From Macrostomum lignano (lineage: Eukaryota), in the NCBI GenBank assembly GCA_002269645.1, contig NIVC01002435.1, forward strand, positions 86,492 to 150,491: a stretch of 64,000 nucleotides of DNA, in the 5' to 3' direction. Under the pieces are notes generated by a model. That model did not search any database and had not been told where the DNA came from. It saw only the letters and a program-made list of their open reading frames with translations. The position numbers and the translations under genes are program-made. Shown in pieces: positions 43,915-46,900 of the stretch (its first letter is position 1; every line of letters begins with the position of its first letter).

Positions 43915-46900
43915 TCAGTCCATCTGCAGGCCAAAGTCGTTGCAGACATCCTGGAAGTCGCGCATCGCCTCGGCGCTGGTCGGCTGCTCCAGGCCCGCCT
44001 GGCCGAGCGAATCGAACAGCTGAGCGTCGTCCAGGTCCGACATGCTGATGCCGTAGCCCAGGCCGGAGCCGCGCGGCGTCTGCAGCGGCGCCGGCGTCAC
44101 CAGAGCGCCGCCGGCGCCATCCGAGCTGGCGCCAATGTTGTGAGCCGGAGCGGCAGAGGCGACCTCCTCCAGGCCGAGCATCTGCATGAAGCTGGCGCTC
44201 AGCGCCGCCGTTTCATCGGCGTCGGCGTCCAGATCGACGGAGATTCTGGCCGGCAGAATCGGCGGCTGCGATGACAGGCTGGGCGGCAGGGCCGGGGTGG
44301 CGCTGCCTCCGCTCACCAGGCAGTCCAGCTGAGGCGGCTCCGGCCGCAGGATCGGCGGCTGCTGCTGCTGCTGCTTCCGAGGCTGCCGACGCTGCGTGGA
44401 GGACGGCGTCAGCCGGCGCCACTTTTCCAAGCAGCGCTGGTCCTCGGTGGACAGAAGCTCCACAGTGGTGCCAGCAGCGGCCGCGCCAGCAGCGGCCACA
44501 CCGGAAGTGGCGGCGCCGACGACGGTGAAAGTGGCGGCAGCAGCGCCAGACTTTACGGCGACGGAGTCGGAAGCGGCAGTGGTGGCGGCTCCTCCAACCG
44601 ACGTGGTCGCGGCGGCAAGGCTGCCGATTCGCCGGCGCCGCTGCTCCGCTCGCTGCATCCGCGCCTTCCGCTCCTGCTTCCGCTGGGCGGCGGTCAGCCT
44701 GCCACCGCCGCCGCCGCCGCGACTGCCGTCCCCGCCGCCGACGGCCCCCTCGTCCATGCCGCCGGCGTCCCGGTTGCCAAGCAGCGCCCGTTTGAGCATG
44801 TCCTTGGTGTGCTCGCTCACCGTGATTCGCGGTGCGTCGCAGTTGCGGAAATACTTCGACCGGTTCACGTAGTGGTGGCCGGTGCCGCCAGCGGCGTTGG
44901 ACTTTTGGTGGCCCTTCGATTTGCCGACCGGCTTTGATTGAACGGCGAAGGCGGGTGCTGGGGCGGGTGCTGGGGCGGGTGCTGGCGCGGGTGCAGTCGC
45001 GGGTGTTGCTGGAGTCTCAGTGGTGGCCGCAGGTGCCGGCGCAGCGGCTTTTCTCGCCTCGCTCAGCATGGCGGCCCGAAGGCCCTCTTTGCTTTCGTCC
45101 GGCGGCTCCAGGGCTGCCGGGTCGAAGACGGCAGTGCAGGTCGGCTCGGACAGGGGGTTGCGGAACCTGTTCAGGAACAGGTGGCCCAGCGCCTGGGAGA
45201 GACGGGGTTGCATGAAGGCTTGATTGTGCACACCCATCAGCCCCACCCGCACACCCATCAGCCCCACCCGCACACCCATCAGCCCCACCCGCACACAGAT
45301 CAGCCCCACCCGCACACCCATCAGCCCTACCTGCACACCCATCAGCCCCACCTGCACACCCATCAGCCCCACCCGCACACCTGCTCCGCGGTGAGCCGGC
45401 CATCCGGGCAGTAGGACAGCAGTTTCCCCACTAAATCGACGGCTTTCCTGGTGGCGCCCGGGAACAGCACGGCCAGCGGCACGGGCGGCTCCGGGGCCGC
45501 CATGCCGGCAACCATGTCGCGGATGAGCTCGGAGCAGGAGGCGGCCAGCAGCTGCTGTGGCGGCGGGCCGAGCTTGCTGACAATGAGAGAGAGCTGGCGG
45601 ATGCAGTCGGTGCCCGGGAACAGCGGCGCCCTGTTGAGCATCTCGGCCAGGATGCAGCCGGTGGACCACAGGTCGACGCTGCTGGTGTAGGTCGGGTGGC
45701 CCAGGAGCAGCTCTGGCGCCCGGTACCAGCGGGTGGCCACGTACAGAGTTGGCATCACCTGCGAACTGGGCTGCTGCCTCGGCTGGCTCTGCTGCTGCTG
45801 GCTGCCAGAAATCTGCGCTGGCGGAAGACTCCTGGCCATGCCTGGAAGGGGAAAGCAGGAATGGTGAGAATCGGGAGGTTCCAGTCTCAGTTCAGCAGTT
45901 TTTACCAGTCTGTCACATGCATACTAGTCATACTACCGACAGTACTACTGCCATGCTACTCATGAGTAGTAAATTAAAGAACTTCCCCGACTCACCAAAG
46001 TCGCCGATTCTCAGCTGGCAATTAGAATTCACCAGCAGGTTGCTGGGCTTCAGGTCGCGGTGGGTGACGCCAGCCGAGTGAATGTACTTTAATCCGCAGA
46101 GCAGCTGGTACAGAAAGTACCTGAAATTTTTACAGGTACACGCTCACAGGGTGTACACGCTCACAGGGTGTACACGCTCACACAGGGTGTACACGCTCAC
46201 AGGGTGTACACGCTCACACAGGGTGTACACGCTCACAGGGTGTACACGCTCACACAGGGTGTACACGCTCACAGGGTGTACACGCTCACACAGGGTGTAC
46301 ACGCTCACAGGGTGTACATGCTCACACAGGGTGTACACGCTCACAGGATGTACACGCTCACAGGGTTTACACGCTCACACAAGGTGTACACGCTCACAGG
46401 GTGTACACGCTCACAGGGTGTACACGCTCACACAAAGTGTACACGCTCACACAGGGTGTACACGCTCACACAAGGTGTACAGTAGCCCTGACTTTCTCCA
46501 TCGTCAGGCGTGTACACGCTGTGTGTCTTCTAGTTGGCCAGACTGGCCAGTAGTTAATGCGCTAAACACAGAGCTCCCCTGCCCCCGACTCACTGGGTAT
46601 GCTCCATAGACAGCGGCTGACTGGAGGACAGAATCTTGTGCAGATCGCTCTCCATTAGATCGAACACAACGTAAAGCTCAGAGAAATCTTTCTCCTTCGG
46701 CACGATGATGCTCTTGATGGAGATGATGTTTGGGTGGGAGAAATGGCGCAGTATTTTGATCTCCCTATAGGTGCGCTTGGCTATGGAGACGGCGTCAAAG
46801 ATACGCGAAGTCTTCTTGATGGCCACCTTCTCGTTGGTGGTCTTGTCGAGCGCTGAACACACGACTCCATATGCGCCGGCGCCTGAAAGATCAATTCGAA

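Follow-up and report, generated by a model that had tools for sequence, protein, structure and literature searches.

Gene model and public copies

The subject of this work is a gene for a mitogen-activated protein kinase (MAPK) found in a stretch of 64,000 nt from the flatworm Macrostomum lignano (GenBank assembly GCA_002269645.1, contig NIVC01002435.1, positions 86,492 to 150,491 of the forward strand). This whole stretch is called the window below and is numbered from its first letter. The gene occupies the minus strand (47064..43914) and consists of five exons which together encode a 753-aa product. All four introns are of the GT..AG type and the spliced product aligns with human ERK5 without gaps at the junctions. 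From its sequence, the protein is an orthologue of ERK5 (MAPK7), a conventional and probably catalytically competent MAP kinase with the long C-terminal tail specific to ERK5. Its activation loop carries T-L-Y at the dual-phosphorylation motif and is expanded by a Gln-rich segment. The features of the gene, all on the minus strand, are the following:

46956..47064 (-): exon 1, with the ATG at 47064; M1 to I36 and the first base of the G37 codon
46594..46882 (-): exon 2, with the Gly-loop GAGAYG, VAIK (K59), the alphaC helix (E77) and the ERK5-type Q-loop SSSQPL
46121..46593 (-): intron 2, GT..AG, filled by a 36/53-bp minisatellite (46136-46481)
45996..46120 (-): exon 3, from the catalytic loop HRDLKPSN to D173-F174 and the first base of the G175 codon
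45842..45995 (-): intron 3, 154 nt, GT..AG, phase 1, interrupting the Gly codon of DFG
45381..45841 (-): exon 4, with the activation loop, the P+1 loop and the C-lobe to Q328, including R245 (equivalent of Arg-258)
45756..45830 (-): Gln/Ser/Pro-rich segment of the activation loop, S179 to V203, encoded by CAG-rich DNA
45741..45749 (-): dual-phosphorylation motif T206-L207-Y208, encoded by ACT CTG TAC and preceded by P205
45193..45380 (-): intron 4, GT..AG, mostly a 21-bp minisatellite (array 45228-45381)
43914..45192 (-): exon 5, with the end of the kinase domain and a 400-aa ERK5-type C-terminal tail; stop codon TGA at 43916-43914
45142..45162 (-): common docking (CD) site R339-N-P-L-S-E-P345, counterpart of human H351-D-P-D-D-E-P357
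44359..44826 (-): tail motifs 1 to 3, the middle one basic and resembling a nuclear localization signal (NLS), in the one frame matched by a hidden Markov model (HMM) of 64 other ERK5 tails
44005..44082 (-): tail motif 4, which aligns with vertebrate TPKGSGAGYGVGFDLEEF in the C-terminal transactivation region

An in-frame stop lies six codons 5' of the exon 1 ATG, and the N-terminus is the same as that of UniProt entry A0A1I8IZB4. The first-pass annotation of this DNA, made by a model from the letters alone, concerned the interval 45721-45841. This is the start of exon 4, and exon 3 contributes D-F together with base 1 of the Gly codon; the annotation had joined the two exons correctly across intron 3. 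It had also noted that the ACT CTG TAC codons are located mid-exon and two substitutions from a Glu codon, which is indeed the case: at 45749-45741 they are 92 nt into the 461-nt exon 4. A search of the window with tblastn revealed neither a second kinase copy nor an alternative exon encoding TEY and, in answer to a question raised by the annotation, no TEY paralogue was present among the homologues listed in our database searches. The idea that part of the Gln-rich segment is an unrecognised intron was examined and discarded: use of the internal acceptor-like sequence tttctggcag would lead to a frameshift and to a TGA within 15 codons.

Public databases already contain the gene, in the form of a truncated MAPK model without a name. 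A0A1I8IZB4, from M. lignano, is 100% identical to our translation over residues 1-401, loop included. A0A1I8JJX2, a second copy from M. lignano with 98% identity, retains both P-T-L-Y and the insert. The differences in this second copy are three conservative replacements in the kinase core and two (Q>R and P>S) within the Gln-rich segment. Since TLY occurs both in A0A1I8IZB4 and in the diverged copy, a base-call error at the Leu codon is very unlikely; the first-pass annotation had called it unlikely from the codons themselves. Both public models stop at 436 aa, while the frame in the window stays open. They leave this frame inside the Ala-Pro repeat of exon 5, (GCACCCGCCCCA)n, at about 44950-45000 of the minus strand, but at different repeat units, a pattern which fits the absence of one C from a C4 run. 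Termination follows, so that the conserved ERK5 tail of 350 aa is missing from both models. Judged on the reading frame, the 753-aa model should replace the two 436-aa models; the practical value of such a corrected full-length model of M. lignano ERK5 is modest. An exact look-up of the UniProt model among transcript contigs gave no match, and a homologue search with exons 3-5 returned no Macrostomum transcript fragments, although the query's own cluster was also missing from its output.

Relationship to ERK5

Human and other vertebrate ERK5 (MAPK7; PDB entries 4B99, 4IC7 and 5BYZ) are the top match of the kinase domain in both sequence and fold, with 49-50% identity. In a phmmer search of PDB sequences, human MAPK7 scored 345 bits (338-346 over its chains), compared to 300 for plant MPK4 and 279 for ERK2. 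A search of 5.8 billion proteins listed, after a few multi-domain proteins, MAPK7 matches exclusively, at about 50% identity, and in an exhaustive search of representatives clustered at 50% identity the best single-domain matches were mollusc and brachiopod MAPK7 (55-57%). Overall, the best database matches are MAPK7 proteins of molluscs and a brachiopod (52-57% identity). The most similar sequences overall are the MAPK7-like proteins of lophotrochozoans, the superphylum to which M. lignano itself belongs (Pecten maximus, Gigantopelta aegis, Lingula anatina and Owenia fusiformis; 55-57% identity in the kinase domain). An AlphaFold2 model has a mean predicted local distance difference test (pLDDT) score of 82 and a predicted template modelling score (pTM) of 0.81, with pLDDT above 90 in the kinase core flanking the Gln-rich insertion. 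When this model was compared to the PDB with Foldseek, ranks 1-13 were all ERK5 structures.

Trees were built by neighbour-joining (NJ) on corrected p-distances with 200 bootstraps. With named taxa, ERK5 together with the M. lignano proteins is separated from ERK2, plant, fungal, p38 and Hog1 kinases in 166/200 replicates, and in 192/200 when the long-branch nematodes and the acoel are left out. A first tree of 70 sequences, which included representatives of the 50%-identity clusters, had the same topology, but its ERK5 node was weak (19%) because of rogue long branches. Both M. lignano copies fall inside animal ERK5 and human ERK2 (checked to be 100% identical to 3SA0) falls outside the clade which holds them.

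The residues that distinguish ERK5 from ERK1/2 point in the same direction. In the docking groove, ERK5 has a Q-loop which is one residue longer and contains a conserved Gln, and it has an Arg at position 258 (Glatz et al. 2013, PMC3605678). The Q-loop of the M. lignano protein, SSSQPL, equals the human HSSQPL in length and contains the Gln, and R245 aligns with human Arg-258, which is an Asn in ERK2. The protein also carries DFGMAR. All 105 ERK5-type matches have DFGM[AS]R, in contrast to the DFGLAR of ERK1/2 (MAPK1/3), p38 and plant MAPKs; this use of DFG-Met as a diagnostic is empirical and derives from the alignments made here. ERK1/2 share with the M. lignano protein the MAPK fold, the T-x-Y and P+1 sequence and the phosphate-binding arginines, but they have a shorter Q-loop and no long tail. 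The P+1 sequence is also that of vertebrate ERK5.

At 102 columns that are invariant in 18 animal ERK5s, the M. lignano protein shows three changes (I121L, R141C and Y338F). Ordinary ERK5s show 0-5, ERK2 shows 9, and the nematode and acoel homologues 6-21. Such conservation indicates that the gene is under purifying selection and is not a decaying copy. The catalytic motifs GxGxxG, VAIK, HRD, DFG and APE and the alphaC Glu are all intact, and T206, Y208, R154, R178, R212, R215, K59, E77, D155 and D173 occupy invariant columns of a 40-sequence alignment.

Beyond the kinase domain, a MAFFT alignment with eight ERK5 tails identified four collinear motifs. These are shared with vertebrate ERK5 and comprise ISxxTKxxLKxALL, a basic NLS, LSxxDxxLLExW and TP(K/R)GSGxGYG; compared to the vertebrate tail, that of M. 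lignano is shorter and rich in Ala, Gly and Pro. The HMM of other ERK5 tails matches the annotated frame of exon 5 only (31.8 bits, E=1.6e-11), the other two frames scoring <=0. The best matches in PDB and Foldseek comparisons, NJ bootstraps of 83-96%, the signature residues and the four collinear tail motifs together argue for ERK5 orthology. They bear out the call of an ERK5/MAPK7 orthologue with intact VAIK, HRD and DFG and with ERK5 tail motifs made in the first-pass annotation, which had suggested a MAPK phylogeny as a check.

The activation loop and its possible consequences

The first-pass annotation presented the TLY motif as an anomaly, on the premise that ERK5 has TEY. As a general rule this premise does not hold. 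Among the best 120 homologues listed, 105 possess an ERK5-type loop. TEY accounts for 65 of these, the named taxa being vertebrates, amphioxus and a sponge; it was also found in Ciona and hagfish. TQY follows with 27/105 and is found in gastropods, bivalves, a chiton, a brachiopod, an annelid, nemerteans and a priapulid. The remaining loops carry TLY (3/105, M. lignano and two transcript clusters), TSY (3/105), TVY (2/105) or TNY (1/105), the last three all in echinoderms, TTY (2/105) or TAY (1/105), both in hemichordates, and THY (1/105, Octopus). Further variants were observed in the 50%-identity representatives: TQY in filarial and Caenorhabditis nematodes and in a rotifer, SQY in C. briggsae, TAY in a choanoflagellate and TMY in one metagenomic sequence. 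The acoel Convolutriloba macropyga (LOC142336202; P0279 / P0237) has TIY, with Ala at the preceding position (-1) and a 60-residue loop. TQY is therefore the protostome norm and TEY is limited to chordates and a sponge. Since 40 of the 105 loops are non-TEY, T-E-Y cannot be regarded as defining ERK5 outside the chordates.

The Leu codon CTG is two substitutions from the Glu codon GAG but a single transversion from the Gln codon CAG. Leu could thus have arisen by CAG>CTG, one nucleotide from the protostome consensus TQY. It is a lineage-specific state at a site which is free to vary in the ERK5s of non-chordates.

The two other TLY clusters (P0035/P0137, Logan assemblies) comprise the full-length transcripts L001-L004 from four sequencing runs. 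Like the M. lignano protein they carry an identical T-L-Y within a clear ERK5, but they have F-L-T-L-Y, with Leu at -1, a normal 20-residue loop and an intact acidic CD site (HDQDDEP). Three of the contigs use CTG for the Leu and the fourth uses CTC and, as these come from different species, the synonymous difference indicates that Leu has been maintained. In the NJ tree, on which their placement is based, they are sister to the MAPK7-like protein of Octopus sinensis (THY). TLY thus seems to have arisen independently, probably in a cephalopod lineage, and is compatible with a conserved and expressed ERK5.

The Gln-rich insertion, also reported in the first-pass annotation, is genuine. From DFG to Tyr the M. 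lignano loop measures 33 residues, compared to 19-20 in 99/105 ERK5 loops. The additional 13-14 residues are rich in Gln, Ser and Pro and are encoded by imperfect CAG/AGC repeats. They are located in the N-terminal part of the activation loop, which is also longer in rays and sharks (27 residues, Ser-rich), nematodes (24-30) and the acoel (60). The pLDDT falls to 50-63 over residues 181-210, and of the five residues at which the M. lignano copies differ, two are located in the 25-residue Gln-rich segment. The stretch is likely a disordered and tolerated low-complexity expansion of triplet-repeat type.

Comparison with its relatives places these features in context. Relative to vertebrate ERK5, the M. 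lignano protein has TLY for TEY, Pro for Met or Leu at -1 and a loop longer by 13-14 residues; its CD site reads NPLSEP instead of DPDDEP, and no PB1-binding extension of the EIEDFHARRE type is seen. The lophotrochozoan proteins are also non-TEY but differ from it at four of four points, having TQY, a loop of 19-20 residues, Met at -1 and an intact DPDDEP. The ERK5-like proteins of the acoel and of nematodes (Onchocerca, Caenorhabditis) are fast-evolving and resemble it in having a non-Glu residue at x (TIY, TQY, SQY), loops of 24-60 residues and degenerate CD sites, the acoel protein being a more extreme version of the M. lignano loop. They have lost more of the invariant residues (6-21/102 against 3/102), and the nematode proteins retrieved are shorter (383-572 aa).

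We propose that dual phosphorylation of T206 and Y208 would order the loop and switch the kinase on in the usual way. The Thr and Tyr are in register with the P+1 sequence, and the arginines which bind the two phosphates in the structure of phosphorylated ERK2 are all present (R73/R76 of alphaC, R154 of HRD, R178, R212 and R215). By analogy with vertebrate ERK5, the tail may mediate nuclear import and transcriptional activation. The first-pass annotation had further proposed that Leu changes the specificity towards MEK5 and phosphatases. This is unsupported because Q, H, L, T, A, S, V, N, I and M are all found at x in clear ERK5 homologues and because the specificity of the human module resides in docking through PB1 and the D-motif. 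For MKK5 and ERK5 this has been shown experimentally, and MKK1 is able to activate ERK5 when it is joined to the PB1-D region of MKK5 in a chimera (Glatz et al. 2013, PMC3605678). The literature on the role of T-x-Y in specificity is not unanimous: the introduction of a recent preprint (10.1101/2024.10.01.616093) describes the motif as crucial for the specificity of MAP kinase kinases (MAP2Ks). Neither TLY nor the Gln-rich insert by itself implies a new regulatory logic. For the explanation as a whole, namely an ERK5 orthologue with an ordinary TLY variant and a disordered, tolerated expansion, we estimate a probability of about 0.8.

Several features weigh against so conventional a picture. 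Pro at -1 (P205) is unique among the 105 + 29 ERK5-type loops; the residue is Met or Leu in 104 of the 104 other loops and Met, Leu, Gln or Ala in the representatives. In the CD site, RNPLSEP replaces HDPDDEP, so that D352, D354 and D355 become N, L and S; Asp-352 of human ERK5 contacts Lys-110 of MKK5 (PMC3605678). The EIx(D/E)(F/Y)H segment present in 8/8 other aligned ERK5 tails is unrecognisable; in human ERK5 this region lies in the extension (385-399) which binds the PB1 domain of MKK5 (PMC3605678). Moreover, a parasitic flatworm, Schistosoma mansoni, is reported to be without ERK5 (PMC3117856), and our trees are distance-based (NJ) and not maximum likelihood. Together with TLY and the insert, these changes could signify an ERK5 whose recruitment has been altered, by way of a co-evolved MEK5, another MAP2K or autophosphorylation. 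We consider this unlikely. The CD site and the loop are altered to a comparable extent in hemichordates (HSSTPEP in the CD site), nematodes and the acoel, all of which are still clear ERK5 homologues, and because of this similar erosion the CD and PB1 features do not remove the protein from the ERK5 family. Binding of the PB1 domain is mostly through main-chain atoms (PMC3605678), R391 and R392 of the extension are also unconserved in other invertebrates, and the kinase core and the Q-loop/Arg-258 docking groove are conserved. P205, the CD site and the PB1 extension would then leave a small chance of altered activator recruitment within the family. A specific form of this idea, in which Macrostomum ERK5 is no longer recruited by classical MEK5, is activated by another MAP2K or by autophosphorylation and represents an intermediate towards the pathway loss of parasitic flatworms, seems to us quite unlikely.

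The protein might instead be a paralogue, left by a recent duplication of the genome, that is decaying or no longer functional and whose activation loop is drifting. Its long NJ branch, its low-complexity insert and the ending of both public models at 436 aa could be read in this way, but 99/102 ERK5-invariant residues and every catalytic motif are retained, the copies differ outside the insert by three conservative changes only, the 400-aa tail frame is open and matches the ERK5 tail HMM, and no TEY or TQY paralogue is found among the homologues listed; we regard decay as very improbable. That an original TQY or TEY is masked by a wrong base, a faulty assembly or a model with wrong splicing is scarcely credible. 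Although CTG is one base from CAG and no transcript match was retrieved, TLY is found in an independent public assembly as well as in the second, diverged copy, its codon is mid-exon and the window contains no alternative exon for the P+1 segment.

With the ordinary ERK5 thus preferred, TLY reads as an ordinary lineage variant and the surprise dissolves on comparison with other invertebrate ERK5s. Among the ERK5s compared here, the x of T-x-Y is not conserved outside chordates, which is under-reported: in the few papers that we found, ERK5 is described as having TEY apart from rare exceptions, or protostomes are even said to have lost it. Substituted x residues in sea-urchin and choanoflagellate ERK5 were remarked on in the preprint cited above (10.1101/2024.10.01.616093). 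The statement that protostomes lost the whole ERK5 pathway (PMC3605678) is contradicted by the MAPK7 orthologues of molluscs, annelids, brachiopods, nemerteans, priapulids, rotifers, nematodes and M. lignano, and had been corrected by the report of both MEK5 and ERK5 in oyster (PMC4883820). Literature searches on flatworm ERK5 (Platyhelminthes kinomes, planarian ERK5, Macrostomum MAPK) found nothing relevant, and the Fasciola kinome paper makes no mention of ERK5 or MEK5. The M. lignano gene indicates that ERK5 has been retained in a free-living flatworm, in contrast to its reported absence from Schistosoma (PMC3117856). MEK5 has to accept a variety of residues at x, in keeping with a docking-driven specificity. 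The suggestion in the first-pass annotation that antibodies against pTEpY would be blind to the M. lignano kinase is reasonable, but this is not a special property, since most invertebrate ERK5s share it; a signal from phospho-TEY antibodies is not a safe readout of ERK5 activity in invertebrates.

Surroundings of the gene

The window is unusually dense in minisatellites, with more than 20 separate arrays whose units are 11-105 bp long and mostly match at 90-99%. Many of these are intronic, including the two within the ERK5 gene (45228-45381 and 46136-46481). Others are found at 427-1036, 2452-3691, 17694-18526, 19080-19776, 31308-32201, 39497-40308, 40842-41755, 55623-57005 and 62502-63105. 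Directly downstream of ERK5 is a GC-rich multi-exon gene (42170-40300, minus strand), with minisatellites of 18 bp and 11 bp filling its introns and no Pfam match for its two largest open reading frames (ORFs). Upstream of ERK5, in an AT-rich stretch, a 177-aa ORF (50823-51353, minus strand) contains a GIY-YIG nuclease domain (E=1e-5) and may be the remnant of a Penelope-like retroelement, which is a guess.

Two further genes can be proposed from domain matches. On the minus strand, exon-sized ORFs at 10874-11914 and 12530-13642 match Pfam ASC (amiloride-sensitive sodium channel, DEG/ENaC), the first its C-terminal half (E=6e-22) and the second its N-terminal half (E=2e-25), and look like a neighbouring ion-channel gene. 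On the plus strand, ORFs at 14758-15879 and 15983-16753 match innexin (PF00876), the first weakly and the second with E=3e-18, and probably form an innexin gene. Finally, 32633-38228 is occupied by a 5.6-kb satellite made of about 266 copies of the 21-bp unit TTCTATTCTGTTCTATTCTCA, built on TTCTA, which gives rise to extreme strand skews (GC skew -0.55, AT skew -0.65).

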